From positions 1,364,001 through 1,428,000 of the forward strand of contig NW_027361819.1 in assembly GCF_039654945.1 (NCBI RefSeq): 64,000 nucleotides of DNA, given 5' to 3'. The DNA comes from Dendrobates tinctorius. Taxonomy: Eukaryota. A program made the translations under genes and the position numbers. Below are positions 9,741-63,038 of the stretch, in pieces. Numbering within the stretch: the stretch's first letter is position 1; the number at the start of each line of letters is the position of its first letter. Under the pieces are notes generated by a model that ran no database searches, had not been told where the DNA came from, and worked only from the letters and a program-made list of their open reading frames with translations.

Positions 9741-11309
9741 ATGGCGTCTGCGGAGCTGAGGGACGAGCTGAACTGCTCCATCTGCCTGAGCCTCTATACA
9801 GATCCCGTATCCCTGAGATGTGGACACAACTTCTGCCGCTCGTGTATTGTGAGTGTGCTGGATGCCCAGGAGGCGGCTGGAGGGTATTCCTGTCCTGACT
9901 GCAGAGCAGAATATCTGGAGCGTCCGGCCCTGGAGAAGAGCCGAAAGCTGAGGAACATAGTGGAGCGTTTCTCATCTACTCAGCCTGGTATGGAGGAGAC
10001 CAGGATCTTCTGTACTTACTGTACAAAGTCTCCTGTACTGGCAGTAAGGACATGTCTGCAGTGTGAGACCTCCATGTGTGAGGAACATCTCACAGCCCAT
10101 AACAAGTCGGTGAATCACAATCTCATTGAACCAACAGTGTCGTTTAAGGGTCAGAAATGCTCCACACACAAGGAGGTGCTGAAATATTACTGTCCTGTAG
10201 ACGCCGCCTGTATCTGTGTGTCCTGCTGGGTGGCCGGAGAACACAGGGGACATTACGTGGAGCTACTGGATGAGGCCTCTGAGAAGAAGAAGGAGAAACT
10301 AAAGGAATATCTGAATGATCTGAACCCACAAAAAACAGTTATTCAGACAAGAGTCCAGAATCTGCAGGATCGTAAAAGAAAGATCCAGGAGAAAGCCTCC
10401 GATAAGACGAAGAACATCAGTAAGAGATTTATGGATATCAAGGAGCAACTGGAAATGGCAGAAAAGAAAGTTCTGAGCGAGGTCTCCAGGCAGGAGGAGA
10501 AGATTGTGTCCAAGATATCTGATCTGATCAAGAAGCTGGAAATACAGGAGGACGAGCTGTCCAGGAAGATGTGTCACGTGGAGGAGATGTGTCGTGTCAC
10601 CGACCCAATAAGACTCTTAGAAGAAAGTGACATTACAGTATGTAGTCATGGAGGTGATAAGGACACCGGGGGAGATGGTGGAGAGGTCAGTTCTGAGGAG
10701 GATCTGGATGAGGTTCTGATCTCACTGACCTTACTCCGATCTATGAGGGATATTGTCACCAATGTAACATCAGAGCTCGGGGTCCATGTCCCAGACATAT
10801 TGCTGGATGTGGACACTGCTCATAGAAGGGTGAAGGTATCAGAAGATCTGAAAACAGCAACAGATTCAGATAACAAACAGGTGAGGCCAGAATCACCAGG
10901 GAGATTTGTGACTTATTCCCAAGTCTTAAGCAGATGTGGTCTCTCCTCAGGACGACATTACTGGGAGGTAGAGAGGAACCAGATAGGAGACTGTTCTATC
11001 GGATTGTCCTATCCAACTATAGAAAAGGAAGGAGATAAGTCTGCTATTGGATGTAATGATAAATCTTGGTGTTTGTGTAGGTATGATGAGGAATATAATG
11101 TATGGCACAACTCCGATGTATTATCCCTCAGTGTAGAGCCAACATGTCCAACACTTGGTATCTTCTTAGACTATGAGGCCGGGCGTCTGTCCTTCTATGA
11201 GCTGTGTGACCCCATCAGACACTTACACACCTTCACCGCCTCCTTCACTGAACCCCTACATGTTATCATCTATGTGGATTATGGGGCCTCTGTTACAATA
11301 AGAAGCTGA
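9741..11309 (+). CDS. TRIM E3 ubiquitin ligase, RING-B1-B2-CC-PRY/SPRY (TRIM25/TRIM39/finTRIM-like), single coding exon, copy 1, 522 aa
   Basis: RING CSIC..CGHNFC..C..CPDC; B-box1 CTYC..CLQC..C..H; B-box2 C..H..C..C..C..H..H; coiled coil; PRY LDVDTAHRRV; SPRY SGRHYWEVE, LDYEAG.LSFY. Confidence 0.96.
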   Translation: MASAELRDELNCSICLSLYTDPVSLRCGHNFCRSCIVSVLDAQEAAGGYSCPDCRAEYLERPALEKSRKLRNIVERFSSTQPGMEETRIFCTYCTKSPVLAVRTCLQCETSMCEEHLTAHNKSVNHNLIEPTVSFKGQKCSTHKEVLKYYCPVDAACICVSCWVAGEHRGHYVELLDEASEKKKEKLKEYLNDLNPQKTVIQTRVQNLQDRKRKIQEKASDKTKNISKRFMDIKEQLEMAEKKVLSEVSRQEEKIVSKISDLIKKLEIQEDELSRKMCHVEEMCRVTDPIRLLEESDITVCSHGGDKDTGGDGGEVSSEEDLDEVLISLTLLRSMRDIVTNVTSELGVHVPDILLDVDTAHRRVKVSEDLKTATDSDNKQVRPESPGRFVTYSQVLSRCGLSSGRHYWEVERNQIGDCSIGLSYPTIEKEGDKSAIGCNDKSWCLCRYDEEYNVWHNSDVLSLSVEPTCPTLGIFLDYEAGRLSFYELCDPIRHLHTFTASFTEPLHVIIYVDYGASVTIRS

Positions 11310-12952
11310 GGCCGATGTCGTCCTCGTCACATTATAATGACATTATTCCTTGTCACATGGACACATCAGTATATAGTGAGTTATCAGCGGGACCCTCTAA
11401 TAATACAATGTATATGGCGGAGTCATGGGGGGATTGTTCCTATTGTTTTTTCCTCTTCCCTGTAGATCAGATGCAGAATCAATGATTGAGCAGAATGTAA
11501 ATATTAATGGGTGAATTGTCCTGAGACTGGTAGTTGTTATTCAGTAAAGGGTTAATCCTATCTGATACAGTGCTGGGATATGTCAGCACTCTCTGACTCC
11601 CGGGACCCCCACCGATCCTGAGAATAAAGGGGCTGCAGCATTAGTTCAGCCTCCTGCACATCGGAGCTCTGGACTCCCCCGGTGCAGGAGCTGCAGTACG
11701 GCCGCAGTGGATGGGGGGCACATCGGGGTCCGGAGCGCCGCTGTGCAGGGGAAACAGGGAGGGGATGCAGCAGTAAATCAGCTCTGTGGCCCCTTCATTC
11801 TCAGGGTCTGTGACATATGGAAAGTATAGACCATAAATATATAAAAGGTACAAAATCTACATAGAGGACTCTCGCCTCCACCAATCAGCTCTTCGTCTGT
11901 GGCCCTTGAGGAGTTTCTGTTGTATTTTTGCTGAATAATAAATGCAGCGTCTTGGACTATGTTCACACATTCAGTGTTTTTCCTCCACAGGCACAATCTG
12001 CTCTCCTGGCAGTAAGAAACTTGCAGGTTTTGCTTAGTTTTTGTTGTTTTTTTTCCTGTGTTTTTGTGCATTTATTTCTTGTGCATATTCACCATCAGGT
12101 TTCTGGCACAAAAAAAAGTGGTAAAACCTGATTTCTGCGTCTTTTCAGCGTTTTTGCACCACCCATTGCTTTCTATTGGTGGAAAACACTGGAAAATGCT
12201 GAGACGTGACCGGCTGCATCCTGCAAAATCCGAGGTATTCCACAAAACACTGAGGACACAGACCGAGCCGTGTGCAGGAGATTTCTGACATCTCATAGAC
12301 TTTACTGGGACAGTAAAACGCAGATAAAATTTGCATAAAAAACCCAGAAAAAAAATAACGTGTGAACATGAACATAGCCTTACAGTTCTAGCAAAGTGGA
12401 TGAGATTTCTAGAGATTTCTTCCCTCTGTGCTTCCTTTTTGTTTCCGCACTGTGTCAGTTCCTCTCGCGGCTCTGCTGGGTTTTTTGTAGATTTTCACCA
12501 TAGAATTGTATTACGGTAGATGTGGAAAATCTGTGGCATAAAACACATGATCCCATGACCGCATCAAAGATTTGTCAAATTCAAGCAAGTTTCAAAAACA
12601 AAGCAGCTTTATTTAAAGCATGACAAACCACAAAGACAAAAACCACAAAATCAAAAATGTGATAAAAACACATATAAAAAGCCGCACTCCAAAATGTAAT
12701 GTAGGTAATTAGTGCAGAAAATCTACAACATCAGAAACTCCCCGATTCCTCCTCTCGGGCATGTGGCCTCAGGCTGAGTTCACACTGAGTTTTCTCTACA
12801 AGGATTTAGAAAGAGATTCTGCTCCTAAAACCTCATAGAGAACTGTGTCAAATACTCTGAATAAGTTTCCGACTGAACTGAATGGGGAAAGCTCCTTTAG
12901 TGCAGGCAGAGCTGTTTTTCACGTTATTTTGAGCATTCCCCAGTGACCCTAA

Positions 12953-13231
12953 GGGTACGTGCACACGCTGAGGAATGCTCTGCGGATTAGCCTGCGGATT
13001 ATCATCTCTACAATGGAGGAGAAGGCAAACCGCTGCGGAATCCGCAGAAAAGAATGACCAGACAATTCTTTCTGTGGATTGGAAACCGCAGCAAAAAACG
13101 CGCGGAAAACTCCGCACCGTCTGCACTGCGGTTTCCATTTTGCATAAGATATAATGTTACTGTAAAACGCAGAGAATTCTGCTGCGGATCCGCAGCGCCA
13201 GATCCAGAATCCGCAGCGTGTGCACACACCC
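12953..13231. mobile_element. Harbinger/Tourist-like MITE (unit A only)
   Basis: TAA TSD on both sides; TIR GGGTACGTGCACACGCTG / CAGCGTGTGCACACACCC. Confidence 0.8.
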
Positions 13232-13459
13232 TAATAGGAAGATTATTCCGAGGATCTGGAGCTTTATTTGTGGTAAAATCCTCTCTATAAACAATATGAA
13301 TAACAAAGATGAAGAGGTGACACCGGCAGACGGCGCTCTGCACAAGGGCAGGGGTTTGTTCCTGACGGTCTAATGTTTCAGGACAGACATGGAGGCCACT
13401 TGTCTAATCCACATTCTAGAGCCAAACAGGTGAAGAAGATAAAACCGGAGGCTCCATGG

Positions 13460-15780
13460 TGAAGTCCTGGTGCTAAGAAACAGGGAAGAATGAGGGACTC
13501 TGCCCCCTGGTGGAGGTGTGCAGGGCAGGCACAGTCTGACGGGAGTAGTAGTGAGGTGGTCGTCCTCGTGTAGACGGCTGCTCCGCCTGTGATAGCCGAC
13601 TCATTAAAACAAACTAAATGTTTGTGTCTCGTTGCCAGAAAGGTTTTATATTTCCAAAATATCATAGTTGATTTATTGGGAATTATATTCTTTAGAATCA
13701 GATCGCCACGGACAATGAACCAATGCCGGCATAATATCTTCCTAGCGGAGGCTCGGACTTCACTACAGGAGGTGATGAGACAAAATAGAAATTCAGCCAT
13801 ATTCTCAGTAGTTTTAGCATTTTTCCTCATCTAATCTCCTGTCCTTTTCTCTTTACTACATTCCTTCTGGGACGTCCGTCTGGAGGCGTCTGTAAGGATA
13901 TCTTCAGGGCAGCCATTAGTCAGAAACCTCTCTTTGTAGGAGACGTGCCTGTGTATTAGGCCACATGCACACATGGAGTGTTTGGTGAGTTTTTTACCCC
14001 AGTATTTGTAAGCCAAAACCAGGAGTGGAACGGTCACATGAAAAGGGTAAGGCTGTGTTCACACAGAGGTTTTTTTTTGCATTTTTCCTGAGGATTTACC
14101 AAAAAATCTGCTCAAAAAATGCTTAAAAGAAGCTTCCCATTCATTTTAATGCATTTTGCACTTTTTGTGCATATTGATGCGTTTTTTCGTGGTAAAAAAC
14201 ACAGTATGTTCATTAATTTCGTGGTAAATTTCGCATTTCTGGCTATTTTCTGTGTGTCTGGGGACGTGCGGCAAAAAAACGCACGTTTTCTGGGAAGGAG
14301 TCCGGTTTTTATGCAGAAATTTTCTGCATACGTGTGCACATAGCCTAATAGAAACATTTGCACCACTTCTGCATTTCTCACCGACTCCTTGTTTTGGCTA
14401 CAAATACTTTGGTAAAAAAGTCACCAAATACTCACTGTGTGCATGTGAGCTTAAAGTTCACGTCTAAGGTGCCATTCTTTCTGATCCCCCGATACTGGCA
14501 GTGTGGGAAATGTTTTATCCACTCCGGGAGACAATCATGACCAAATTATACAGAGCTGATAATATCCACATTTCTAAGTAATATGTATGATACAGTCTTG
14601 TCTGTAGGATTTTGTGAGATTGTGAGATCTAGAAATTGGACAGAAGAATAGGTCGGATTAAACACCAGACCTCACGGGGTCAATGTCAATCACCGAACAT
14701 AACATTCAGCTTCATGAACAGTAACTGAGCAAATGAGAAAAAAATCACTAATAAAAAGTTTATAAAAACAAATGCAAGCGATGAAGAGGGACTCAAAATG
14801 CCCCAGTAACAAGTTTACATAAACGGGCGTGAAACGAGACCCCATCGCACAACCCCTCGTCTGCCGGTAGGTCACATCCCCAAAGGAAAAATCATTGTGG
14901 CTCTAAATAAATCTGAGGCTATGTGCACACGATGCAGATTTGCTGCTGATCCGCATTGTGATTTACAGTACAATGTAAATCAATGGGAAAAGAAAAAGAT
15001 GTGTGGAATTGCTGCGGATTTAAAAAAAGTGCATGTCACTTCTTTTGTGCGGATCTGCAGCGTTTCTGGCCCCCTCCATGATAGAAATCCGTAGTGGCAA
15101 AAACTGCAGAAAATCCGCATAAAAACCGCGGCTGCGGATTCTGCCAGGAGATGTGGATTTTGTGCAGAAAATTCTGCACCACTTTTCCTACGTGTGCACA
15201 TAACCTAATACCCTGGATCAAAACCCCAATCTGATCCCGGGAAAGTTCTGTTATTGTACAAATATATTTCTATGGCTTCTGCACCCAAATTAGGCTGAAT
15301 ATTAGAGTCTAAAGAAATTACATCTAAAGTAAAAATTACACAGTGAGATGGTTCAGATGTGACCGAATTCATCTATAAGATGGGAAGAATCCCGTGAAAG
15401 TGATGGTGATTGTGAAAGAAAGGACGGAAGAAATAAATCAGTGTAGTGGGATAAATTCCAAGTGATTGACCCGATCCCCGAAATGATGGGACGTCTGGGG
15501 ATTATTAATATCTGTATGCAGGTTTGGCAAATAATAACAATGAGGTATTTGTATAGTTCTTCATTAATAACAAATCTCTGTCTCTTATGTAGAATTTCCG
15601 CCCGCTCTGCTGCTAAAATCACATTCCGATACTGGATAAATGGCAATCAGAGGAAATAGTCTGATAATGTCTTATCCCCGATATTCGCTGGGATTCAGAG
15701 GTGTTTGCAGTGAGATCCCAGATAGCGGCTCCTCCACCTTCATCAGCGGCCCTTATAATTGTATCCCCAGTGCTCCTTAA
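13460..15780 (-). pseudogene. Decayed Penelope-like RT relic (copy 2), interrupted by MITEs
   Basis: Same fragments as copy 1 (GCAMGS, FISDFFLI, RPIISGIGS, IIRAADEGGG); ends approximate. Confidence 0.8.
14917..15205. mobile_element. Harbinger-type MITE within PLE relic (duplicate at 33617-33905)
   Basis: TIR GGCTATGTGCACAC / GTGTGCACATA(A/G)CC; empty site AATCTAATACCC at 7804 and 58553. Confidence 0.8.
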
Positions 15781-17296
15781 CCCCTTCACGACATATGATG
15801 TACAGTTACGCCGTATGTCGGGTCCCTGCCTGTGATGGGGGATACGGACACAACGAGTGTAATACACATGTAACGCTGAGGCCGTGTTCACACTTAGTGT
15901 AGATGCTGCGTTTATTTGCTGAAGATGTGAATCCGCCTTTTTAACAGTATTTAATAGTGTAGAAAAGCTTTGATTCTGAGCTTAAAAATGCAGCAGCGTT
16001 ATTTTACATGCTTTTCTTTAGGCTCCAGATAGAAGTCTATAGAGGGGAAAAAGCACCAAAACCGCAGCGTTCAGCAGGGTCTTTGGACCACAGGGGACGA
16101 AGATTTCAGGAGATCACGTTCACTTTGCTTAGACATTTAGACCATGTTCACATGTAGCAGAAATGTAGATTATTTTCTGCACAGAAATTCTGCTGTTTAT
16201 CTCCAAGCAAAGTGGATGTGATTTCATGAAAATTGCGCCCCTCGGTGGCCTAATGACGCTGCTGAATTCTGCGGTTTTGGAGCTGTGTTCTTCTCTCTTG
16301 TCTTCTATGTGAAGTCTAAAAAAACACAAATAGAAAACTGCAGAAACTTTATTAAGTTCAGAATCAAAGCTTTTCTGTACTATAAAAAAAACACATTAAA
16401 AACGCGGCCTCTAGTGATGAGAGAACGTGCTCGGTAAGGTGTTATCTGAGCATGCTCGGGTGCTAACAGAGTGTCTTCAGCGTGCTCCAAATATATATCA
16501 GAGTCCCCGCAACTGTTTCACATCCGTCCTGGAGACAGCGGACAGTCCCGGCTGTCTGCTGATTGTCTCCTGCCAGGGTGGAACAAAATGGTAAATGGGT
16601 GTGGTTAGGGGTGTGGCCATGGGCGTGGTTTACCTTTGCCAGGCGCACTGTGCGCAGCATAATTTCTTCCTCTTTCTGTTCTTAAACAGTTGGGAATGCT
16701 GAACATGTGAGCGTGGCCTTAGACACAGCGGGCAGCAGTTCTCATGAAATCACATCCACGTTGTTTGCACAGTTAGGTCGTGTTCACACGTAGCAGAAAT
16801 GCTGCTTTTTTCTCTGCAGAAAATCTGCTGCGTTTAACTGTCCAAGCAAAGTGGATGTGATTCCATGTGACCTCCTGTCCGCTGTGGTCTAAAGACGCTG
16901 CTGAACGCTGCAGTCTTGGGGCGTTTTATCTTTATGAGGAGCCTGAAAAAGACACAAAAGACACAGTTGTATTTCTAATGCTGATGTCGACAGTAGCATC
17001 TGTTTATTGTAGTAAAGGGTCACCCTGTTTGTCCCTATCAGCACCCCATGATTGTGATCACACGGTGCCAATGGCAGACATGATCACCCCAGGCGGAGTA
17101 TATATATATATACAGTGTATACTATGCCACTCATAATCTTGGAGCAATTCATTGCCCATTACTCTGTGACGAGCTTTCCAGGTGTTTTTTATTGGCTCAC
17201 CCACCATTAATGTTTGTACTTATTATGTTGGATATTTCTTCTCTTAAAAATTATTCAATAAAGATCATCAGTCACGCTTTATCCACATCTGCTTAA

Positions 17297-19247
17297 GGCT
17301 AGTTTCAAATTAGCGTTTTTTTGCGCAGCGCATCGTGCGCATAAAAAACGCAAAGAAAAACGCAAAACAAATGTGCGTTTTTTTTTCATCATGCGCACGC
17401 TGATGCGTTACTTGCGTTTTACATGCGTTTTTGCATGCGGTTGCGTTTTTTATGCGCATGCGTTTTTAGGTGTGACATTTCACAATAGAAAAATCCTTGA
17501 CCACCAATGGGTCACCAGTGGGCGTGTGTCATTGGAATGTTTTATAGACCCTGTACTGCTGAATTCATCAGATTTTGCTGCTGTTTCCGGTGTCAAGATG
17601 GACCTGCGTCTGGATAATTTCCGCTTCAAGCTGGATCTTGACATTGCGCTGTCTCAGGCGTATGTCTTTTGTTGCCAGCAAGAAAGGGAGAGGGACAGAC
17701 GGCAGCGGCGTAGGTTTTGGAGGCATCCAATCATCGAACTCCGGCCAAGCCGTGGAGCATATCACACGCTGTACAGCGAGCTACAGGAAAACCCGGAGAA
17801 ATTTGCTGACTATACACGGATGTCCCAGGAAAGCTTCCTTGACTTGCTGGGTATGGTTGAAGGAAACATCCGGAGAAGGGACACTCAGCTCCGGCGTGCC
17901 ATTCCTCCCGAAGAAAGGCTCCTTGTCACCTTACGGTATGTATGTTGTTATGTTTGCATAATTTTTTTGGCTTTTTTTTTTTTTTTTTTGTCCAAAAAAT
18001 TTGGTTTTTTTTGGCTATTGAATTTGAACATTATTTTTGGGAAATTGCTTTTTTGCATAATGGTTTTTCTTCTGTCATGTACTAATCCCAAGCCTTTATA
18101 AAATGTTTTTTTGCTATGTTGTATTAAAAAAACATGCAAAATAGTTAGGCCATGTACTTTTTTATTTTCAGTGTTTTTAGTAATACTCAAGACAGAAATA
18201 CAATTATTTTTTCTTTTTATGTTTGGCAGGTTCCTGGCAACTGGAGAGAGTCTTTCATCCCTGCATTTCCAGTACCGGCTGGGAATCTCTACTTTATCCG
18301 GGATTGTTGCCGACACCTGCAGGGCTCTGTGGGATGTTCTGTGTCCGGAGTTTCTGCCATTGCCCACTGCCGAAAAGTGGCTTCAAATATCGGACAAATT
18401 CTGGGCAGTCTGCAATTTCCCGAACTGCCTAGGAGCGGTGGACGGGAAGCACATCCGCATCACAAAACCCGCAAGAAGTGGCTCCGAGTACTACAACTAC
18501 AAGAAGTACTTTTCCACAGTCCTAATGGCCATTGCGGATGCAGACTGCCGGTTTGTGGCGGTGGACATAGGGGCATTCGGACGGGGCAACGATTCCCAGA
18601 CTTTTAAGAACTCTGATATGGGCTGGAGGTTGTACGCCAACCATTTCAATTTTCCACTGGCACGGCCTCTTCCCCAAACCCAAACTCCACCACTGCCATT
18701 TGTAGTGGTTGGGGATGAGGCATTTCAGATGTGCCCAAACCTGCTGAAGCCGTACTCCAGCCGTGACTTGGACCACCGCAAGAAAATTTTCAACTACAGG
18801 CTTACGAGGGCTCGCAGGACTGTAGAGTGCGCCTTTGGCATTCTAGTGTCCAGATGGCGAATTCTCAGCACCGCCATCAATCTCAAAATGGAAACAGTAG
18901 ATGAGGTGGTGAAGGCATGCGTGGTTCTCCACAATTTTGTTATGGCAAAGGAGCGGCCGAACTTTGACATGGATGAGCCTGCTGCCAACCCAGATTTTAC
19001 TCAGCACCCTCTTCGGTCCTCAGTCGAAGTTGCCCAAATGAGGGACCAATTTGCGGACTACTTTTTATCCGATGTTGGTCGTGTAGCATGGCAGGATCAA
19101 ATGGTTTAATAGTTTTCTTGTTTGTTAAAAATAAAATACATGGTTTTTTATACCTGTACCCAGTGTACTGTGTCTTAATAAACTCCACTACTCATCTGCC
19201 CAGGTTAAATTGAAGAAAGGGAAACCACCATAAAAAAAATAAATATA
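17297..19247 (+). mobile_element. Truncated PIF/Harbinger element (left TIR + transposase only), cut by duplication junction
   Basis: TAA|GGCTAGTTTCA.. left end as at 35998; identity with the full copy stops at 19247. Confidence 0.9.
17598..19109 (+). CDS. PIF/Harbinger DDE transposase, 2 exons (17598-17935, 18230-19109), ~405 aa
   Basis: GT..AG splice restores LLVTLR|FLATGE motif; catalytic GAVDGKH, VGDEAF, RRTVECAFG; no stops after splicing. Confidence 0.9.
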
Positions 19248-19405
19248 TGAAGCATTCCTAGTTCCCTCACAATCTCCTCATGAAATTACCTAATTTCCGG
19301 TCAGCTTCCAGCACATCACTTCCGGTGGACCGTCATGTGTGAGTTTTAAAATGCTCCTCTGGGCTCCACCGTGTACTCCTGGGTCCGTGGGAAAAGCCCA
19401 CTTTG

Positions 19406-21228
19406 TATGCTTCGTACACACTTGGCTCTGCTCCGTACATCCAGTACACATATGGCTCCACTCCGTACACACGACTCCGGTCCGTACACCCCGTACACAC
19501 GTGGCTCCACTCCGTACACCAAGTACACACACGGCTCCAGTCCGTACACCTCGTACACGTGCGGCTCTGCTCCATACACACGGCTCTGCTCCGTACACCT
19601 TGTACACATGGCTCCGCTGTGTACACCTCGTACACACACGGCTCCGCTCTGTACACCTCGTACACACACGGCTCCTCTCCGTACACCTCGTACACACGCG
19701 GCTCCGCTCCGTACACTTCGTACACACGCGATTCCGCTCCGTACACCTCATACACACACTGCTCCGCTCCGTACACCTCATACACATACGGCTCGACTCC
19801 ACTCCGTACACCTCGTACACACACGGCTCCGCTCCGTACACCTCGTACACACACGGCTCCGCTCCGTACACCTTGTACTCACGGCTCCGCTCCGTACACC
19901 TCATACTCACGGCTCCGCTCCGTACACATGCGGCTCCGCTCCGTACACCTTGTACACACACGGCTCTGCTCCGTACACCTCGTACATATTCGGCTCTGCT
20001 CCGGACACCTCGTACACACGGCTCTGCTCAGTACACCTCGTACACACACTGCTCTGCTCCGTACACCTCGTACACACACGGCTCTGCTCCGTACACCTCG
20101 TACACACACGGCTCTGCTCCGTACACCTCGTACACACACGGCTCTGCTCCGTACACCTCGTACACACACGGCTCTGCTCCGTACACCTCGTACACACACG
20201 GCTCTGCTCCGTACACCTCGTACACACACGGCTCTGCTCCGTACACCTCGTACACACACGGCTCTGCTCCGTACACCTCGTACACACACGGCTCTGCTCC
20301 GTACACCTCGTACACACACGGCTCTGCTCCGTACACCTCGTACACACACGGCTCTGCTCCGTACACCTCGTACACACACGGCTCTGCTCCGTACACCTCG
20401 TACACACACGGCTCCGCTCCGTACACCTCGTACACACACGGCTCCGCTCCGTACACCTCGTACACACACGGCTCCGCTCCGTACACCTCGTACACACACG
20501 GCTCCGCTCCGTACACCTCGTACACACACGGCTCCGCTCCGTACACCTCGTACACACACGGCTCCGCTCCGTACACCTCGTACACACACGGCTCCGCTCC
20601 GTACACCTCGTACACACACGGCTCCGCTCAGTACACCTCGTACACACACGGCTCCGCTCAGTACACCTCGTACACACACGGCTCCGCTCCGTACACCTCG
20701 TACACACACGGCTCCGCTCCGTACACCTCGTACACACACGGCTCCGCTCCGTACACCTCGTACACACACGGCTCCGCTCCGTACACCTCGTACACACACG
20801 GCTCCGCTCAGTACACCTCGTACACACGCGGCTCTGCTCCGTACACCTCGTATACACGCGGCTCTGCTCCGTACACCTCGTAGACACGCGGCTCTGCTCC
20901 GTACACCTCGTACACACGCGGCTCCGCTCCGTACACCTCGTACACACGCTGCTCTGCTCCGTACACCTCGTACACACGCTGCTCTGCTCCGTACACCTCG
21001 TACACACACGGCTCCGCTCCGTACACCTTGTACACACACGGCTCCGCTCAGTACACCTCGTACACACGCGGCTCTGCTCCGTACATCTCGTATACACGCG
21101 GCTCTGCTCCGTACACCTCGTAGACACGCGGCTCTGCTCTGTACACCTCGTACACACGCGGCTCTGCTCTGTACACCTCGTACACACGCGGCTCTGCTCT
21201 GTACACCTCGTACACACGCGGCTCTGCT
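19406..21228. repeat. 30-bp minisatellite (unit B), 720 bp longer than unit A copy
   Basis: A/B offset changes from 18236 before the array to 18956 after it. Confidence 0.95.
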
Positions 21229-23019
21229 ACATCTACCCTGTAAACCCCTCCTGACCCCACACATAATTCTCTCATCCAGCACCACAACACCAGCACAGCA
21301 GAGTCCTGCAGACACCATGAGGCAAGGCTGAGCGCACAGGACCTGTGATGAGGTCACAGGAGGGGCGGAGTCAATGGTCACATGATCAGGGGTCTGGACA
21401 AAGGCTACTGATCATGTGACTTTTTTTAAACAGCAGAAAAAAAGGCAGCAACACTTACCTGCCCAGGTCTAAGAACAAATGCACTGCAGGGTGCAGCCAG
21501 CCCATAAAGCAAGATGTCAGCAACACAGGTACAAAATACCAGATTAACAGCCACTCTCCACCTACCCATTCCTGGAGGGGGCGACTGCCCAGTATAAAAC
21601 TGCACAATAAAGGCCGGCATAGGGCGCTGTTCACACAAGGGAACTACACTGTGTCTGGCTCACAGCCTATTAGTCACGCCCCTACTATTCGACTAGGCGG
21701 GCTGGCCAGCACACCCTCAATGCATCCCAGTGTGAACACCCCTCATACGGGAACAAACGTGTTTGGGCTCGGCTGCACTCTGAAAATTAATATAGTGCAA
21801 TAAGTACACAATTAGTGAGGTATTAGCTGATATTTTGGCCAAAATACTTGAGCCCGTAAATTGCGCCAAAGTTCCTCATGCTTACGGGTCCCTACATTAA
21901 ACTAGTTATGTGACCCCCCCTGACTCCTCCCCTCCTGTGACCTCATCACAGGTCCTGTGTACAGAGAAGGGAGCAGGCAAGCGACGCTGTGGGTGGCTGC
22001 AGGGAGGTCTCATGCTAGGGCGAGGATGGGGTGCGTGGCGGCTCATCTCCCTGCAGTGCGGGACAGAAATATCCCGGGAGGGTTGGAAACTATAACCGCC
22101 GTGCACACAGAGGGCCGGCGGCAGGAACAACAGCCAGGCCAGTGGCCACATCAGCGGGCAAGCGGCCAGATGAACGGGCGCTGCCGCCCGCGGCCCACAT
22201 GACAGCGGCCCAGCGGGTAAATGCCCGGTTGGGCATATTACCAATCCGGGCCTGGGCTGGAGCATTAGTTCAGCCTCCTGCACATCGGAGCTCTGGACTC
22301 CCCCGGTGCAGGAGCTGCAGTACGGCCGCAGTGGATGGGGGCACATCGGGGGTCCGGAGCGCCGCTGTGCAGGGTAAACAGGGAGGGGACAGAGCACTAA
22401 ATCAGATCTGTGGCCCCTTCATTCTCAGGGTCTGTGACATATGGAAAGTATAGACCATAAATATATAAAAGGTACAAATTCTACGTACAGGACTCTCATC
22501 TCCACCAATCAGCTCTTCGTCTGTGGCCCTTGAGGAGTTTCTGTTGTATTTTTGCTGAATAATAAATGCAGCGTCTTGGACTATGTTCACACAGTGGGTT
22601 TTTTCTCCACAGGCACAATCTGCTCTCCTGGCAGTAAGAATCTTGTTTAAAAATCAGGTCTTGTATAGTTTTTGTTGCTTTTTTTCCTGTGTTTTTGTAC
22701 ATTTGTCTCTTGTGCATGCTGATAAAGTTTAGTGCATAAAAAAAAAATGGAAAATGCTGAGACGTGACCGGCTGCATCCTGCAAAATCCGAGGTATTCCC
22801 CAAAACACTGAGGACACAGACCGAGCCGTGTGCAGGAGATTTCTGACATCTCATAGACTTTGCTGGGACAGTAAAAGCTAAAATTTGCATAAGAAAACGA
22901 AGAAAAAACATAATGTGAACATAGCCTTACAGTTGTAGCAAAGTGGATGAGATTTATGGAGATTTCTTCCCCTCTATGCTCCTTTTTTGCGCAGAGTAAT
23001 CTGCCCGTTTCCACACTGT

Positions 23020-31806: not shown

Positions 31807-32185
31807 GGGCAGTTTCACACGTCAGTGTCTCCGGTAAGTGTAGTGACAGTTTTCTCACGAACCGGAGACACTGACACACGTAGACGCATTCGAATGAATG
31901 TGTCTATGCAGATGTCAGCGTGTTTTCACGGACCGTGTGTCCGTGTCCAGAACACGCTGACATGTCCGTTTTTGTGCAACAGCACGGATCGCACGGACCC
32001 ATACAAGCCAATGGGTCCGTGTAAACACGTACCGCACATGGATGCTGTCCGTGTGCGTTTTTAAAAGTCAAAGGGTTAACATTGAAACTAATTTTTCAAA
32101 TACACGGATACACAGACAGCACACGGATGTCACACGGACACGAATAGCTCCGGTACCGGAATTATCTGGAAGCGTAAAACTGCAC
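31807..32185. mobile_element. Harbinger-type MITE (unit B only)
   Basis: Imperfect TIR GGGCAGTTTCACACG / GCGTAAAACTGCAC; absent at the homologous site near 57655. Confidence 0.65.
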
Positions 32186-32189
32186 AGTA

Positions 32190-37850: not shown

Positions 37851-38006
37851 TAGTTTTCTTGTTTGTTAAAAATAAAATACATGGTTTTTTCTACCTGTAC
37901 CCAGTGTACTGTGTCTTAATAAACTCCACTACTCATCTGCCCAGGTTAAATTGAAGAAAGGGAAACCACCATAAAAAAAATAAATATATAAATATATATA
38001 TATATA

Positions 38007-39677: not shown

Positions 39678-39737
39678 TATACCGGATGGTCAGCCATCCA
39701 ACTCTGAAAGGGATACTATATTTCATTTTTTTTTTAG

Positions 39738-39787
<50 letters not shown>

Positions 39788-39840
39788 AAAAATGAAATAT
39801 AGTATCCCTTTCAGAGTTGGATGGCTGACCATCCGGTATA
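39678..39840. repeat. Perfect foldback palindrome with (TA)n centre
   Basis: TATACCGGATGGTCAGCCATCCAACTCTGAAAGGGATACTATATTTCATTTT.. and its exact reverse complement ending at 39840. Confidence 0.92.
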
Positions 39841-44260: not shown

Positions 44261-44292
<32 letters not shown>

Positions 44293-52213: not shown

Positions 52214-53863
52214 TTAATTGATGTAAAAAGACATAAATCCATGCGACACGTTCATTCCAGCATTGAGAGTGTCAAAGGTCGTCATAAATTTATACTCACA
52301 GACTCTTCTCTCTCTCTGAGATGAGAAGTTACCTTTCAGTACCAGTAATTTCATATCCATGTTGCTGTGATGAGGCGTACAAAAATGTTTTGCCACAGGT
52401 AGATCCATTCTTTTTTCTCTTATTGTGTGACGATGAGCATTCATCCTTGTTCTAAGCTTTTGCCCTGTCTCCCCCACATACAGACCCCCAGTTGGACATT
52501 TAGTACAAATAATTAAGTATACCACATTAGATGTAATGCAGCTGAAAGTACCTGGGATCTTGTAGTCCTGATGTGAATTGGGGATCTTTATCTTGTCCGT
52601 GGGCATTATAGATGGACAGGTTTTACATTTTTTCTGGTTGCAAGGAAAGGTTCCTCCAGCTGTTGGATAGGACAGGGAGCTTCTGACAATGATGCTTCTT
52701 AGATTTGGGGGCTGCCTAAAACACAGCAGTGGGGAGTCTGGAAAAATGGATTGTAATTGGGCATCTTTTTGTAGTAAAGGTTGTAATTTCCGTGCAGCGC
52801 CCCTTAGCACCTCCAGATTTGGGTTGTAGGTGACTACTAGAGGCACTCGGTTATTTTCTTCTTTAGCTTTGTAATGTAGCAGGTGATTCCTTGACATTCT
52901 GGTGGCTCTTGTAATTTGGTTTTCAATTGTTCTTGGATGGTAACCCTGATTCAAAAAGGTCTTTTTGAGGTGACCAAGGTGTTTGTCTCTATCCATGGGG
53001 TTGGAACATATACGATTGTATCTGATGGCTTGGCTATAGATAATAGAGTTCTTTATGTGTTTTGGATGGAAACTGTCCCATTTAAGGTATGTTGGACGGT
53101 CAATTGGCTTCTGATACAGGGATGTCTCTATTTCATTGTTTTTTAGCTTAATGATGGTGTCCAAAAAGTTAATCTCAGTGCTGGAGTATTTGAGTGTTAA
53201 ATTGATGGTGGGATGAAATTGATTAAACTGTTCGTGGAACGTCTTTAGCTGTTGCTCAGACTCCGTTCAGATGATTAAAATATCATCAATGAAGCGGTAG
53301 TAGGCCAGGGGCCTGATGGGGCATGAGGACAAAAAGTCGCTTTCAAGCTTGGCCATGAAAAGATTTGCATACTGTGGAGTCATTTTACTTCCCATAGCTG
53401 TGCCAGTCTCCTGTAGATAGATTTTGTTGTCAAATTCAAAGTAATTGTGGGTGAGGATGAATTTTATAAGTTTCACCACAGCATCAGCATCAGTCCCTGT
53501 GTTTTCCATAAAGAATTTGCAGGCATTTAATCCATCTTGGTGGGGGATATTAGAGTACAAAGATTCCACATCAATGGTGGCCAGGATGGTTCCTTCTGGT
53601 AGAGGACCTATTGCTGCTAGTTTATTCAATAGGTCTGTTGTGTCCTGAATGTAGCTAGGTGTATCCTTCACCAGTGGTTTTAGAATACCCTCTACCCATC
53701 CAGATACCTGCTCAGTGACGGTGCCCACACATGAAATAATTGGTCTTCCTGGATTTCCAGTTTTGTGGATTTTGGGAAGCATGTAGAATGTCCCTATTCT
53801 TGGACTCTCTGGTATCAGGTCATCACTGACTCTTATGGACTGGTCAGGCAGACAAGATACCAA
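52214..53863 (-). pseudogene. PLE RT + GIY-YIG ORF, 5'-truncated, one in-frame TGA at 53267-53269
   Basis: ORFs 53267-53863 and 52214-53164 share a frame; LPKIHK, PGRPIIS, DVESLYSNI, GTAMGS, RFIDDILII*T (expected W), VVYLIIC..LYVGETG. Confidence 0.93.
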
Positions 53864-54299
53864 CTTGTTTAGTTCCTTGTAATACTACTGTGTAGGATCC
53901 AACTCCAATTTTCTATACCTGAGTAGTCCCGAAAGCTTGCAATGTGTTACCATCTTTTCAGTTAGCCATTAAAAGGTATCAACTACTGAGGACTCTCAAT
54001 TCTGAATATTATTCTATCTACTGGCTAACAGGTACAAAGATATACATCTTTCCTCCACCACTATGCTGTAATATCTGGACGCTGCGGATTGAAGAGTGCG
54101 GCTGTACGTTCAATCCGCAGCAAATCCTGACACAACACGATATGTGGAAACATACTAGAGCTTTCTTCCTAAATGTGGATCAGCATTCAGCAGTGAGCAC
54201 AACCGAGGAGCTGTAGGGGTTAATTATCCTGCACAGACTCTCCGCTTTCCTACTGGGAGGAAACTTTTCCACTTTCAGTTCCTGCTCTTTCCCACTACA

Positions 54300-55865
54300 A
54301 TGGCGTCTGCGGAGCTGAGGGACGAGCTGAACTGCTCCATCTGCCTGAGCCTCTATACAGATCCCGTATCCCTGAGATGTGGACACAACTTCTGCCGCTC
54401 GTGTATTGTGAGTGTGCTGGATGCCCAGGAGGCGGCTGGAGGGTATTCCTGTCCTGACTGCAGAGCAGAATATCCGGAGCGTCCGGCCCTGGAGAAGAAC
54501 CGGAAGCTGAGGAGCATAGTGGAGCGTTTCTCATCTACTCAGTCTGGTATGGAGGAGACCAGGATCTTCTGTACTTACTGTACAAAGTCTCCTGTACCGG
54601 CTGTGAAATCCTGTCTGCAGTGTGAGACCTCTCTATGTGACGACCACCTGACAGCTCACAACAAGACAATGGATCATATATTAATAGATCCCACAAGATC
54701 TTTTTTCAACAAAAAATGTTCCCATCACAAGAAGATTCTGGAGTATTACTGCTCGCAGGACGCGGCTTGTCTGTGTGTGTCTTGCTGTTTGATTGGAGAA
54801 CACCGAGGACACCAGGTGGAACTTCTAGATGAGGCTTCTGAGAAGAAGAAGAAGAAACTGAGGAAATATCTGGATGAACTAAACCCACAAAAAGCAGAAC
54901 TTCAGACAAGAGCCCAGAATCTGCAGGATCGTAAGAGGAAGATCCAGGAGAAAGCCTCCGATAAGAGGAAGAACATCAGTAAGATATTTATGGACATTAA
55001 GAAGCAAGTGGAAATGGCAGAAAAGAAAGCGCTGAGCGAGGTCTCCAGGCAGGAGGAGAAGATTGTGTCCCAGATATCTGATCTGATCAAGAAGCTGGAA
55101 ATACAGGAGGATGAGCTGTCCAGGAAGATGCGTCACGTGGAGGAGATGTGTCGTGTCACCGACCCAATAAGACTCTTACAAGAAAGTGACATTACAGTAT
55201 GTAGTCATGGAGGTGATGAGGACACAGGAGGAGATGGTGGAGAGGTCAGTTCTGAGGAGGATCTGGATGAGGTTCTCATCTCACTGACATTACACCGATC
55301 TATGAGGGATATTGTCACCAATGTAACATCAGAGCTCGGGTTCCATGTCCCAGACATATTGCTGGATGTTGATACTGCTCATAGAAGGGTGAAGATATCA
55401 GAAGATCTGAAAACGGCAACAAGTTCAGAAGAAAAACAGATGAGACCAGAATCACCAGGAAGATTTGTGAATTACTCCCAAGTCTTAAGCAGATGTGGCC
55501 TCTCCTCAGGACGACATTACTGGGAGGTAGAGTGGAACCAGATAGGAGTCTGTGAATTGGGAATGTCCTATCCCAATATAGAAAGGGAAGAAGAGTCTGC
55601 TATTGGATCTAATGATAAATCTTGGTGTCTGGGTATGTATAATGGAGGATATAAAGTATGGCACAACTTCAATGCATTAACCCTCAGTGTAAAACAAACA
55701 TGTCCAACACTTGGAGTCTTCTTAGACTATGAGGCCGGGCTTCTGTCCTTCTATGAGCTGTGTGACCCCATCAGACACTTACACACCTTCACCGCCTCCT
55801 TCACTGAACCCCTACATGTCGTCTTCTATGTGAATGATGGGGCCTCTGTTACAATAAGAAGCTGA
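54300..55865 (+). CDS. TRIM E3 ligase RING-B1-B2-CC-PRY/SPRY, copy 3, 521 aa
   Basis: Intact ORF with all domain motifs. Confidence 0.96.
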   Translation: MASAELRDELNCSICLSLYTDPVSLRCGHNFCRSCIVSVLDAQEAAGGYSCPDCRAEYPERPALEKNRKLRSIVERFSSTQSGMEETRIFCTYCTKSPVPAVKSCLQCETSLCDDHLTAHNKTMDHILIDPTRSFFNKKCSHHKKILEYYCSQDAACLCVSCCLIGEHRGHQVELLDEASEKKKKKLRKYLDELNPQKAELQTRAQNLQDRKRKIQEKASDKRKNISKIFMDIKKQVEMAEKKALSEVSRQEEKIVSQISDLIKKLEIQEDELSRKMRHVEEMCRVTDPIRLLQESDITVCSHGGDEDTGGDGGEVSSEEDLDEVLISLTLHRSMRDIVTNVTSELGFHVPDILLDVDTAHRRVKISEDLKTATSSEEKQMRPESPGRFVNYSQVLSRCGLSSGRHYWEVEWNQIGVCELGMSYPNIEREEESAIGSNDKSWCLGMYNGGYKVWHNFNALTLSVKQTCPTLGVFLDYEAGLLSFYELCDPIRHLHTFTASFTEPLHVVFYVNDGASVTIRS

Positions 55866-59130: not shown

Positions 59131-61469
59131 ACCCCTTCACGACATATGATGAACAGTTACGCCGTATGTCGGGTCCCTGCCTGTGATGGGGGATACGGAC
59201 ACAATGATTGTAATACACATGTAACGCTGAGGCCGTGTTCACACTTAGTGTAGATGCTGCGTTTATTTGCTGAAGATGTGAATCCGCCTTTTTAACAGTT
59301 TTTAATAGTGTAGAAAAGCTTTGATTCTGAGCTTAAAAATGCAGCAGCGTTATTTTACATGCTTTTCTTTAGGCTCCAAATAGAAGTCTATAGAGGGGAC
59401 GAAGATTTCAGGAGATCACGTTCACTTTGCTCAGACATTTAGACCATGTTCCCATGTAGCAGAAATGTAGATTTTTTTCTGCACAGAAATTCTGCTGTTT
59501 ATCTCCAAGCAAAGTGGATGTGATTTCATGAAAATTGCGCCCCCCGGTGGCCTAAAGACGCTGCTGAATTCTGCAGATTTCTTCTCTCTTGTCTTCTATG
59601 TGAAGCCTAAAAAAACACAAGTAAAAGACTGCAGATACTTTATTAAGTTCAGAATCAAAGCTTTTCTGTACTATAAAAAGAACACATTAAAAACGCGGCT
59701 TCTAGTGATGAGAGAACGTGCTCGGTAAGGTGTTATCTGAGCATGCTCGGGTGCTAACAGAGTGTCTTCAGCGTGCTCCAAATATATATTAGAGTCCTCA
59801 AGGCTTTTAGACAACCACAAGACATGATGGGAATGCCCGTTTGTTAGCCAGCCGACCTGGAGACAGCGGACAGTCCAGGCTGTCTACTGATTGTCTCCTG
59901 CCAGGGTAGAATGAAATGGTAAATGGGCGTGGTTAGGGGTGTGGCCATGGGCGTGGGTAACCTTTGCCAGGCGCACTGTGCGCAGCATAATTTCTTCCTC
60001 TTTCTGTTCTTAAACAGTTGGGAATGCTGAACATGTGAGCGTGGCCTTAGACACAGCGGGCAGCAGTTCTCATGAAATCACATCCACTTTGTTTGCACAG
60101 TTAGGTCGTGTTCACACGTAGCAGAAATGCTGCTTTTTTTCTGCAGAAAATCTGCTGCGTTTAACTGTCCAAGCAAAGTGGATGTGATTTCATGTGACCT
60201 CCTGCCCGCTGTGGTCTAAAGACGCTGCTGAACGCTGCAGTCTTGGGGCGTTTTATCTTTATGAGGAGCCTGAAAAAGACACAAAAAAGACACAGTTGTA
60301 TTTTTAATGCAGAATCAAAGATTTTCTGTTGTACAAAAACATTAAAAACGCGGCTTCACATCTGCACCAAAAACAATCAAAAGGAAAAAAGGCATAAAAA
60401 ACCCCGGCAAAACCACAATAATGACAGATTGTTATTGTGCAGTTTGGTGCACAAGTAGATAAGAAGCAACAGAGGAAAACGCAACAGTTACGCTACATGT
60501 GAACACGGCCGTACAGAAAGGATTGGAAAAATGGTTGTTAAAAAGCGCAACATCTCACAAGAAAGAGAAACCTCATATAACGAAGAGGAAAAGTTCTCGC
60601 TGCTACAACTATGAATGAACAAAAATAATAAATGCACAGGTCCCAACCGTCCCGGATACGGCGGACAGTCCCGGATTTGGGTCTGCGTCCCGCTGTCCCA
60701 GGCGTCTGCTGAATGTCCCCCACCGCCCCTCTGACATCTGTCCGTGGTTCTCACAGATGGACTATAACAGGTACATGGTTTATGGGGCTGTTCACATGTC
60801 CGTGTTTTTTGTGGGACGAGTGGTCTGCAAAACATCCGGCAACATGTTCATTATTTATACAAATTAAACTGAACAATTCACGTCTATGAGTCTGAAAAAT
60901 AATCACAGACGGCGTCAGTGCGACTAACATTGTATCAGACAGGAGAAGCTTCACCCTCATCTGTGAAAATCACCAATAAAACACTGATGGTAAAAACTGA
61001 CCGAACACTGATGAAAATGAGAACAAAACCACTGATGGACAACGGCTCGTGATTTCACTGATGTGTGAATAAGACCTAACGATGAGTCCTTCATCAGCCA
61101 CATACAGCGTCGCCTGCCGGACCCCAAATGTATATTTCAGCCTGATAGGAAGAGGTGGAGATGGATTTTACTTCACCCAACTCAAAATTTGTGAAGACTC
61201 TTCTTATTATGCACTGAAGTTTTATGGGTTATCTGCTTACTTCTCCTGCATCATACTGGTGGTGGATTATGTTCATAATAAGACCAGGTGGAATCACTCC
61301 AACTCCTAATCCTACACCAGATCCTCATGACTGATCGTTGGTTTCTTTCTAAGTTGGATTCAGCAATGATCACAACCATGGAGCTGAAGGCTTAATTATT
61401 CTCACAATCCTCCTCCCTTCTTATGGAAAGGAACTTTTTAGCTTTTGGTTCCTGCTCTTTCCCGCTACA

Positions 61470-63038
61470 ATGGCGTCTGCGGAGCTGAGGGACGAGCTGA
61501 ACTGCTCCATCTGCCTGAGCCTCTATACAGATCCCGTATCCCTGAGATGTGGACACAACTTCTGCCGCTCGTGTATTGTGAGTGTGTTGGATGCCCAGAA
61601 GGCGGCTGAAGGGTATTTTTGTCCTGACTGCAGAGCAGAATATCCGGAGCGTCCGGCCCTGAAGAAGAACCGGAAGTTGCAGAACATAGTGGAGCGTTTC
61701 TCATCTACTCAGCCTGGTATGGAGGAGACCAGGATCTCCTGTACTTACTGTACAAAGTCTCCTGTACGGGCTGTGAAATCCTGTTTGCAGTGTGAGAATA
61801 CTTTCTGTAATGACCACCTGAATGTCCACAACAAGACATTAGATCACATATTAATAGATCCTACAAGATCTTTTGGTAACAAAAAATGTTCCCACCACAA
61901 GAAGCTTCTGGAGTACTACTGCCTGCAGGACGCGGCTTGTCTGTGTGTGTCTTGCTGTCTGGTTGGCGAACACCGTGGACATCTGGTGGAACTTCTAGAT
62001 GAGGCTTCTGAGAAGAAGAAGATGAAACTGATGGAATATCATAATAAACTAAATCCACAAAAAGGAGAACTTCAGACAAAAGTCCAATATCTGCAGGATC
62101 ATAAGTGGAATATCCAGGAGAAAGCCTCCGATGAGAGGAACAACGTCAGGAAGATATTCAATGCCATTAGGAAGCAAGTGGAAATGGCAGAAAAGAAAGC
62201 GCTGAGTGAGGTCTCCAGGCAGGAGGAGAAGATTGTGTCTAAGATATCTGATCTGATCAAGAAGCTGGAAATACAGGAGGAAGAGCTGTCCAGGAAGATG
62301 CGTCACGTGGAGGAGATGTGTCGTGTCACCGACCCAATAAGACTCTTACAAGAAAGTGACATTACAGTATGTAGTCATGGAGGTGATGAGGACACAGAGG
62401 AAGATGGTGGAGAGGTCAGTTCTGAGGAGGCTCTGGATGAGGTTCTGATCTCACTGACCTTACACCGATCTATGCGGGATATTGTCACCAATGTGACATC
62501 AGAGCTCGGATTCCATGTCCCAGACATATTACTGGAGGTGGACACTGCTCATAGATGTGTGAAGGTATCAGAAGATCTGAAAACAGCAGCAGATTCAGAT
62601 AAAGAACAGGTGAGACCAGAATCACCAGGGAGATTTTTGACTTACTCCCAAGTGTTAAGCAGATGTGGCCTCTCCTCAGGACGACATTACTGGGAGGTAG
62701 AGTGGAACCAGAAAGGAACATATGAATTGGGAATGTCCTATCCCAGTATAGAAAAGAAAAGAAAGGAGTCTGGTATGGGATATAATGATAAATCTTGGTG
62801 TCTGTGTATGTATGATGGAGAATATAAAGTATATCACAACTCAGATGAACTAACCCTCAATGTAAAGCCAAAATGTCCAATACTTGGGGTCTTCTTAGAC
62901 TATGAGGCCGGGCTTCTGTCCTTCTATGAGCTGTGTGACCCCATCAGACACTTACACACCTTCACTGCCTCCTTCACTGAACCCCTACATGTCGTCTTCT
63001 GTGTGGATGATGGGGCCTCTGTTACAATAAGAAGCTGA
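61470..63038 (+). CDS. TRIM E3 ligase RING-B1-B2-CC-PRY/SPRY, copy 4, 522 aa
   Basis: Intact ORF with all domain motifs. Confidence 0.96.
   Translation: MASAELRDELNCSICLSLYTDPVSLRCGHNFCRSCIVSVLDAQKAAEGYFCPDCRAEYPERPALKKNRKLQNIVERFSSTQPGMEETRISCTYCTKSPVRAVKSCLQCENTFCNDHLNVHNKTLDHILIDPTRSFGNKKCSHHKKLLEYYCLQDAACLCVSCCLVGEHRGHLVELLDEASEKKKMKLMEYHNKLNPQKGELQTKVQYLQDHKWNIQEKASDERNNVRKIFNAIRKQVEMAEKKALSEVSRQEEKIVSKISDLIKKLEIQEEELSRKMRHVEEMCRVTDPIRLLQESDITVCSHGGDEDTEEDGGEVSSEEALDEVLISLTLHRSMRDIVTNVTSELGFHVPDILLEVDTAHRCVKVSEDLKTAADSDKEQVRPESPGRFLTYSQVLSRCGLSSGRHYWEVEWNQKGTYELGMSYPSIEKKRKESGMGYNDKSWCLCMYDGEYKVYHNSDELTLNVKPKCPILGVFLDYEAGLLSFYELCDPIRHLHTFTASFTEPLHVVFCVDDGASVTIRS

Follow-up and report, generated by a model that had tools for sequence, protein, structure and literature searches.

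A tandem array of single-coding-exon TRIM genes in the frog Dendrobates tinctorius, with differently evolving modules and a PRY/SPRY domain under diversifying selection

The window analysed here, a stretch of 64,000 nucleotides of the Dendrobates tinctorius genome (RefSeq assembly GCF_039654945.1, contig NW_027361819.1, positions 1,364,001 to 1,428,000), contains four intact class-IV TRIM genes, which we call T1 to T4 (Table 1). We read it, with a probability of roughly three in four, as part of a large tandem array of class-IV TRIM genes that belong to a frog-wide family with a single coding exon. The modules of these proteins evolve in different ways, and the PRY/SPRY domain is under diversifying selection that presumably reflects pathogen recognition.

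All four genes are uninterrupted open reading frames (ORFs) in which RING, B-box, TRIM_CC, PRY and SPRY score above the Pfam cut-offs, which bears out what an initial annotation of the locus had proposed, namely four intact intronless TRIM paralogs. The RING is matched by zf-C3HC4_4 and zf-RING_UBOX (E 1e-11 to 1e-12), and the eight zinc ligands of the C3HC4 pattern (C12, C15, C27, H29, C32, C35, C51, C54) are unchanged across T1–T4 (8/8). The intact RING suggests that the proteins could act as E3 ubiquitin ligases. A zf-B_box match at residues 137–174 reaches 37–38 bits against a cut-off of 24, with invariant zinc ligands, while a B-box1-like stretch at residues 90–125 stays at 18–23 bits, under its cut-off of 27, and keeps the cysteines and histidines. 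The coiled coil scores 33–38 bits (cut-off 30), PRY 41–45 bits and SPRY 51–60 bits. Residues 1–43 are identical in all four proteins, as is the block 483–508 in the C-terminal part, so that the constancy noted earlier at both ends is real. The four patches singled out in SPRY (374–381, 412–433, 446–462 and 509–514) differ between the genes in the way described. One qualification concerns the number of paralogs: since T1 and T2 are 99% identical and lie inside a duplicon, the window yields only three independent TRIM sequences.

In the deposited annotation (GCA_039654945.1) T3 is a single-exon gene. T4 is fused there with sequence past the window end to give one 1240-aa product (L001:17171-21566, corresponding to the window from 61470 onward), which is probably a fused gene model. 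Within the window, tblastn detected no further TRIM copies, fragments or pseudogenes, and an Rfam scan returned no family at gathering score.

Table 1 Features of the window and related loci. Positions refer to the window unless a locus prefix is given.
Feature	Position	Strand	Basis
T1, intact class-IV TRIM gene with a single exon and a type A B-box, 522 aa	9741-11309	+	ORF, Pfam
T2, near-identical copy of T1, 522 aa (3 aa / 4 nt differences)	28700-30268	+	ORF, alignment, Pfam
T3, intact TRIM paralog with a type B B-box, 521 aa (84% aa identity to T1)	54300-55865	+	ORF, alignment, Pfam
T4, intact TRIM paralog with a type B B-box, 522 aa (79% aa identity to T1)	61470-63038	+	ORF, alignment, Pfam
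Conserved block upstream of T1, putatively its proximal promoter or 5' UTR	9617-9740	+	paralog homology, Bufo conservation
Equivalent upstream block of T2	28576-28699		
Equivalent upstream block of T3	54187-54299		
Equivalent upstream block of T4	61349-61469		
Conserved 3' flank of T1, putative 3' UTR (equivalents after T2, T3 and T4)	11310-11737	+	paralog homology
Duplicon copy 1 (~18.96-kb tandem unit), carries T1, bounded by 30-mer minisatellites	1176-19248	.	self-BLAST, tandem repeats
Duplicon copy 2, carries T2, terminates at a Tc1/mariner insertion followed by the gap	20098-37989	.	self-BLAST
Assembly gap of 468 N (the length is an estimate only), not overlapping any TRIM gene	39210-39677	.	
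Paralogs with lost single zinc ligands	L004:16120-17670, L005:10001-11563, L008:10001-11563		

The array continues beyond the window. At least 13 distinct intact paralogous coding sequences (CDS) occupy about 420 kb (1.31–1.73 Mb) of contig JAYMGB010000173.1, to which the window belongs, all on one strand; this count comes from the neighbouring loci fetched on that contig and is a lower bound. A paralog some 290 kb from T4 in the array shares 98% identity with it. All 52 sampled dendrobatoid sequences (52/52) form one clade, separate from those of Bufo, hylids and leptodactylids. The same-strand arrangement and this single clade bear out an expansion by tandem duplication. A dispersed intact copy of 523 aa is found on contig JAYMGB010000175.1 (L009:10001-11572) within an intron of an antisense gene encoding 1916 aa, and has in common with the array copies only the stretch between about -107 and +1 and a portion of the 3' flank. 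Beyond the window, single zinc ligands are missing from some paralogs whose reading frames are intact: C51 of the RING is replaced by R, or, in B-box1, C105 by S or C91 by N. The 598-aa paralog P0062 carries an insertion of about 70 aa in the linker between coiled coil and PRY. Such changes may represent early decay or functional variants.

How old is the intron-free state? For every D. tinctorius paralog fetched, the length of the gene call equals that of the CDS, that is, there is a single coding exon. The same holds true for two Bufo bufo clades located on different chromosomes, for a relative in Xenopus tropicalis and for one in Bombina bombina. The family, and with it the intron-free coding exon, is thus old, found across frogs and not specific to D. 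tinctorius, which corrects the earlier notion of a lineage-specific repertoire. A profile-free exhaustive search returned 947 clusters at E<=1e-30, and the full-length collinear distant relatives that were looked up all came from frogs (10/10). RefSeq labels the proteins of the family 'E3 ubiquitin/ISG15 ligase TRIM25-like'. Longer RefSeq models of 589 aa raised the possibility of upstream exons, which was rejected because their extra N-terminal residues are a read-through of contiguous upstream DNA; an intron in the 5' untranslated region (UTR) may exist, given an acceptor-like CAG at about -27. In X. tropicalis the single-exon relative adjoins a multi-exon TRIM gene, which spreads a 632-aa RING/B-box/PRY/SPRY protein over 7.6 kb (L012:13625-21228).

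The description of the protein outside SPRY as an invariant scaffold, in contrast, does not hold. The B-box module is the most divergent part of the protein, and the constant modules are near-identical at synonymous sites too. Residues ~91–236, which comprise B-box1, B-box2 and the proximal coiled coil, show a nonsynonymous divergence (dN) of 0.15–0.28, above the 0.12–0.15 of SPRY. Between T1 and T3 or T4 the synonymous divergence (dS) varies more than 15-fold along the gene: it amounts to 0–0.05 in the RING, 0.9–2.6 in B-box1 and B-box2, 0.05–0.19 in the distal coiled coil/linker and 0.09–0.13 in SPRY. When 12 paralogs are considered, dS is 1.36 between B-box types, 0.08–0.09 for RING and distal coiled coil, and 0.18 for PRY/SPRY. 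T1, T2 and T3 have the same first 129 nucleotides, from which T4 departs at one position; this near-identity at the nucleotide level implies that the N-terminal constancy is partly a matter of homogenisation. Trees built from different segments also conflict. The B-box of T1 groups with those of the paralogs L003 and L008 (support 100/100), and at the DNA level the B-box data reject the PRY/SPRY groupings (approximately unbiased (AU) test, p=5e-34 and 4e-6). Such conflicting domain trees show gene conversion or recombination.

A set of 98 proteins from 12 hyloid species places this mosaic in a broader frame. Trees of the whole protein, of the RING and of the distal coiled coil/linker follow the frog families, with support of 92–99 for Dendrobatoidea. 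The B-box tree splits into two types (99%), each of which includes both Bufonidae and Dendrobatoidea. Accordingly split are the AU tests: the B-box data reject dendrobatoid monophyly (p=0.014), and the RING and coiled-coil data reject the monophyly of B-box type A (p=0.004). Judged from these comparisons, RING and distal coiled coil/linker are homogenised within frog lineages by gene conversion plus purifying selection, and at least two ancient B-box types predate the split of Bufonidae and Dendrobatoidea and are reassorted by recombination. A small region stands apart at codons 479–498 (11175-11234 in T1), where synonymous diversity over 12 paralogs is 0.012 compared to 0.1–0.2 in the codons flanking it; a conversion hotspot, a constraint at the nucleotide level or small-sample noise could each account for this.

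The PRY/SPRY domain tells a different part of the story. Across the 98 proteins, column entropy peaks at positions 362–363, 375–381, 391–393, 417/419, 430–438, 446–462 and 509–514, with another cluster where B-box1 and B-box2 meet. The positions found hypervariable in other species were then measured in five phylogenetically independent D. tinctorius pairs. At the 27 sites above 2 bits the ratio of nonsynonymous to synonymous differences per site (pN/pS) is 1.71 (P=0.024), compared to 0.48 at other sites, and the ratio of nonsynonymous to synonymous changes (N:S) is 4-fold higher at the cross-species hypervariable sites (Fisher p 1e-6 to 1e-8). A high N:S at just those sites that are hypervariable in other species argues that the pattern is not due to chance. 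The hypervariable sites of the B-box have a pN/pS of 0.74 with a pS of 0.44, which speaks for old divergence and not for adaptive change.

Codon models agree with the pair counts. They were fitted with our own Goldman-Yang site-class likelihood (F3x4, fixed maximum-likelihood tree). For PRY/SPRY, the model M2a is preferred over M1a with a likelihood-ratio statistic (LRT) of 77 (p=1.6e-17), placing 15.6% of the codons at an omega (dN/dS) of 4.4. To limit recombination artefacts the comparison was repeated on short segments, each with its own tree, and remains significant for PRY (p=0.0015), SPRY 404–470 (1e-7) and SPRY 471–522 (6e-5). It is not significant for the RING (p=0.21), the B-box/proximal coiled coil (0.07) or the distal coiled coil/linker (0.30). 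The selected sites include, in T1 numbering, 363, 375, 391, 393, 417, 419, 432, 446, 460, 462, 482 and 511–515, and they coincide with the cross-species hypervariable sites. The proposal that discrete PRY/SPRY positions diversify under selection is therefore supported by both site models and independent pairs, and the signal is seen only in PRY/SPRY; the site-model dN/dS check suggested with it does find positions with omega above 1 in this domain.

Could the patches simply be unconstrained, drifting neutrally at an omega of about 1, with the excess above 1 produced by recombination among the paralogs? Recombination is demonstrably present, the whole-domain omega of PRY/SPRY is 0.76–0.96, and broader site classes in the independent-pair test yield only P=0.07–0.10. 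Yet M1a already holds a neutral class and is still beaten by M2a by the margin given above, the same PRY/SPRY positions are hypervariable over 12 species next to invariant neighbours, and all ORFs of the array are intact. We regard neutral drift as quite improbable and diversifying selection as the better description.

To place the variable sites in three dimensions, an AlphaFold2 model was built on the 98-sequence alignment. It is confident only for PRY/SPRY (pLDDT 85–96) and for the long coiled-coil helix, a single helix spanning residues 181–286. Foldseek matches the PRY/SPRY model to the PRYSPRY domains of TRIM25, TRIM14, TRIM16 and TRIM21 with a TM score of ~0.85, and it superimposes on the TRIM25 PRYSPRY structure 9iun with an rmsd of 1.3 A. 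The closest solved relatives are TRIM25 over the RING/B-box/coiled-coil (RBCC) part (E 5e-56) and TRIM14 together with TRIM25 for the B30.2 domain. According to the predicted secondary structure, 24 of the 40 hypervariable sites fall in loops and 16 in strands. With 24 of 95 loop residues compared to 16 of 76 strand residues, there is no enrichment in loops, and the term 'hypervariable loops' used at first is better replaced by 'surface patches'. In the strands 417–423, 442–448, 451–456 and 506–513, hypervariable positions alternate with invariant hydrophobic ones (entropy correlation r=0.66 at lag 2 vs r=0.36 at lag 1). In the model, the variable sites would thus form a contiguous solvent-facing patch made of loops and one face of a sheet, neither buried nor confined to loops.

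Copies of the gene also share their flanks. Directly 5' of the ATG, Dendrobates and both Bufo clades (two Bufo bufo genes) share a conserved block of ~100 bp, which contains an AT-rich TTAAT box near -90 as well as an IRF/ISRE-type GAAANNGAAA core on the minus strand near -33 (-27 to -33). Of the 13 D. tinctorius paralogs 3 have this core without a mismatch, as does one Bufo gene out of the two, against a background of 0.9% per 130 bp, and we take it as a lead for interferon control and not as a demonstration. Homology between divergent paralogs stops anywhere between -60 and -465 upstream and between +1 and +1367 downstream. The shared 3' flank does not end in a poly(A) tract, and no target-site duplication was found. 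Taken together, the variable flanks and the missing A-tract and target-site duplication indicate that the copies spread by tandem or segmental duplication at the DNA level. A sharp 5' boundary near -125 was considered as an mRNA start and rejected, as it is specific to T1.

These flanks bear on how the family came to lack introns. The initial annotation had invoked a retroposed founder, and the locus offers little for it: no poly(A) remnant, target-site duplication or fixed 5' end survives, and the promoter-like upstream block travels with the gene and is shared with Bufo. Stepwise intron loss is an alternative route to an intron-free gene, and among the frog loci covered no parent gene was identified. 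A spliced TRIM25-like mRNA retroposed in the distant past and multiplied afterwards only at the DNA level nevertheless accounts for a CDS without introns in Dendrobates, Bufo, Xenopus and Bombina, and this distribution requires any retroposition to be older than crown frogs. That canonical TRIM25 and the majority of class-IV TRIM genes have several exons counts in favour of such an origin. Intronless finTRIMs in medaka provide a precedent: 47 of 55 medaka finTRIM genes are intronless (PMC2657112), contrary to the earlier remark that finTRIMs are normally multi-exon. We consider an ancient retroposed founder a tentative idea that falls somewhat short of an even bet.

A recent duplication is visible within the window. 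By self-BLAST, 1176-12848 matches 20098-31802 at 98.4% identity and 13547-19248 matches 32186-37989 at 96.8%, which defines the two copies of the duplicon that carry T1 and T2. Are these truly two loci, or two haplotypes of one locus that the assembler set in tandem beside the gap? The coding sequences differ by only 4 nucleotides, the flanks are as similar as just stated, and copy 2 stops about 1.2 kb before the run of Ns. On the other side, the same 30-mer minisatellite bounds both copies and offers a natural substrate for unequal crossing-over, a Tc1/mariner insertion is private to copy 2, and the array holds other recent duplicates, among them an identical CDS at two places ~60 kb apart on the contig and more places of similar kind. 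We judge a haplotype artefact to be on the unlikely side and prefer two loci, with the 30-mer arrays flanking the duplicon perhaps having mediated the unequal crossing-over.

The gap itself begins 8.9 kb past T2 and ends 14.6 kb before T3, and no TRIM reading frame touches it; as its length is only estimated, it may hide another TRIM copy. It sits between the 3' end of the Tc1/mariner element and a (TA)n palindrome. The transposase ORF of this element (HTH_Tnp_Tc3_2 and DDE_3; 38155-39195, + strand) looks intact, is found only in duplicon copy 2 and has its stop codon 15 nucleotides before the gap. Directly after the gap, a perfect long palindrome surrounds the (TA)n run (39678-39840) and is the likely cause of the assembly break. 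GC-rich, strand-skewed minisatellites occur at 100-2272, 19409-21228, 6401-7423, 25361-26383, 5325-5676, 24285-24636 and 42010-42502; with units of 30, 19, 71 and 43 nucleotides, the minisatellites give rise to spurious long ORFs in all frames. Each duplicon copy further contains a Harbinger/PIF-type transposase (DDE_Tnp_4, E 6e-28) at 17373-19109 and 36129-37850 (+ strand), composed of two ORFs in the same frame that are split by an AT-rich stretch with a stop, possibly an intron. The DDE_Tnp_4 ORFs cover 18111-19109 and 36846-37850, and the Harbinger ORF is absent from the other ~260 kb of the array sampled, being restricted to the 19-kb duplicon. A reverse-transcriptase ORF fragment (RVT_1, E 2.5e-11; 53267-53863, - strand) is found 437 bp upstream of where T3 starts, on the strand opposite to T3.

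Several known TRIM systems invite comparison. Alike in the way the family works are the teleost finTRIM (ftr) genes. These also encode TRIM25/TRIM16-like RBCC-B30.2 proteins in tens of tandem copies, with recombination and with positive selection at B30.2 positions that match the variable loops of TRIM21 and the hypervariable regions of TRIM5 (PMC2657112, PMC3137616). Most medaka copies are intronless like the frog genes (PMC2657112, PMC3137616). Differences exist as well: finTRIMs are described as specific to teleosts, without a Xenopus orthologue (PMC2657112), zebrafish ftr genes are multi-exon whereas the single exon is frog-wide, and the ancient B-box dimorphism sets the frog family apart. 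The resemblance is thus one of mode and would not prove membership.

In squamates, harbiTRIM genes are tandem class-IV TRIM arrays that are antiviral, interferon-induced and located near a Harbinger element (PMC12262214). They share with the frog array the tandem arrangement and the coupling of duplication to gene conversion, with harbiTRIM breakpoints inside PRY-SPRY (PMC12262214). The Harbinger-type transposase in each 19-kb frog duplicon recalls the harbiTRIM element, but its confinement to the duplicon within the sampled array is unlike harbiTRIM, and the link may be a matter of chance. The mammalian TRIM5/6/22/34 genes are class-IV members too, and PMC2657112 and PMC12262214 describe lineage-specific duplications and, for TRIM5alpha, strong positive selection in B30.2 patches that touch the viral capsid. 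They differ in being multi-exon and few in copy number, with little recombination (PMC12262214), and the frog genes are closer to TRIM25 and TRIM14.

Across the RBCC part, no solved structure gives a better match than TRIM25, in agreement with the RefSeq name. It differs in length (630 aa vs 522 aa), its PRY/SPRY is only 28–31% identical, and the frog genes are multi-copy with a single coding exon. Orthology to TRIM25 was rejected on the grounds of tens of 522-aa single-exon paralogs per genome and this low PRYSPRY identity; judged by sequence, the frog genes are best regarded as paralogous relatives. No description of the frog family was found in the literature searched.

All these observations can be brought together in one picture. 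The gene unit consists of the ~100 bp conserved upstream block, one coding exon of 1.57 kb and a short 3' flank, and multiplies through DNA-level tandem or segmental duplication, as exemplified by the minisatellite-bounded duplicon with T1 and T2. Gene conversion and purifying selection hold RING and distal coiled coil/linker near-identical within a frog lineage, recombination reassorts the B-box types, of which there are at least two ancient ones, and positive diversifying selection acts on ~15% of the PRY/SPRY codons, some placed in loops and others at every second position along four adjacent strands. The protein, dimerised via its coiled coil, would perform RING-dependent ubiquitylation, and its PRY/SPRY surface would recognise fast-changing ligands, most likely pathogen proteins. 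The array would then represent a germline repertoire of specificities comparable to finTRIM, TRIM5 or harbiTRIM. An immune role is suggested by homology, by the pattern of selection and by the partial IRF/ISRE-like motif.

A number of points weigh against this picture. Apart from the low whole-domain omega, the independent-pair test is modest (P 0.02–0.1), and the codon models rely on our own code and on fixed trees, for which the sub-segments and three null control segments reduce but do not remove the risk of inflation by recombination. The 98 proteins are best matches to T1 and hence a biased sample. The outward orientation of the selected sites is derived solely from predicted secondary structure and periodicity, the IRF/ISRE core is imperfect in all four window genes (one mismatch in T1–T3, degenerate in T4), and instead of two loci T1 and T2 could be a single one whose haplotypes were falsely duplicated beside the gap.

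The family might also be real and selected, but for ligands other than pathogens, with functions in the germline or development, in the control of transposable elements or in self-recognition. Amphibians have RBCC-B30.2 proteins, xnf7 and A33 among them, that are nuclear and act in development, most copies carry an imperfect ISRE-type motif, and dense transposon sequence surrounds the array. Nonetheless, the closest solved relatives TRIM25 and TRIM14 are antiviral, several paralogs and Bufo carry a perfect IRF/ISRE core at one and the same position, where chance would give 0.9%, and the same signature goes along with antiviral activity in finTRIM, TRIM5 and harbiTRIM (PMC2657112, PMC12262214). 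Ligands other than pathogens therefore appear unlikely to us, and we favour pathogen recognition.

More speculative is the idea of a modular, recombining innate repertoire. Here, the kept B-box types would serve as 'assembly' modules that conversion reassorts with selected PRY/SPRY 'recognition' modules, RING and distal coiled coil would be the homogenised effector modules, and the B-box type would control which paralogs co-assemble. We think it doubtful as a whole. If B-box type did govern co-assembly, specificity would be combinatorial and go beyond the one-gene-one-ligand model of TRIM5 and finTRIM.

The array is not a new kind of system, and its genes are already annotated as 'TRIM25-like'. 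Most interesting is the way in which its modules evolve: the B-boxes keep an ancient dimorphism, the effector modules are homogenised and the recognition surface is under selection. This is an unusually clear illustration of how one protein can be partitioned into modules by conversion, ancient polymorphism and positive selection. The array would add frogs as a fourth independent case, after fish, squamates and mammals, in which TRIM25-like or TRIM5-like ligases grew into rapidly evolving arrays. Amphibians are declining from ranaviruses and chytrid fungi, and their cell-intrinsic restriction factors are almost unknown. The array provides a sequence-defined set of candidates, dozens of intact and easily cloned single-exon genes with mapped positions of diversifying selection, which could be screened against frog viruses in the same way as harbiTRIM was found in iguana.

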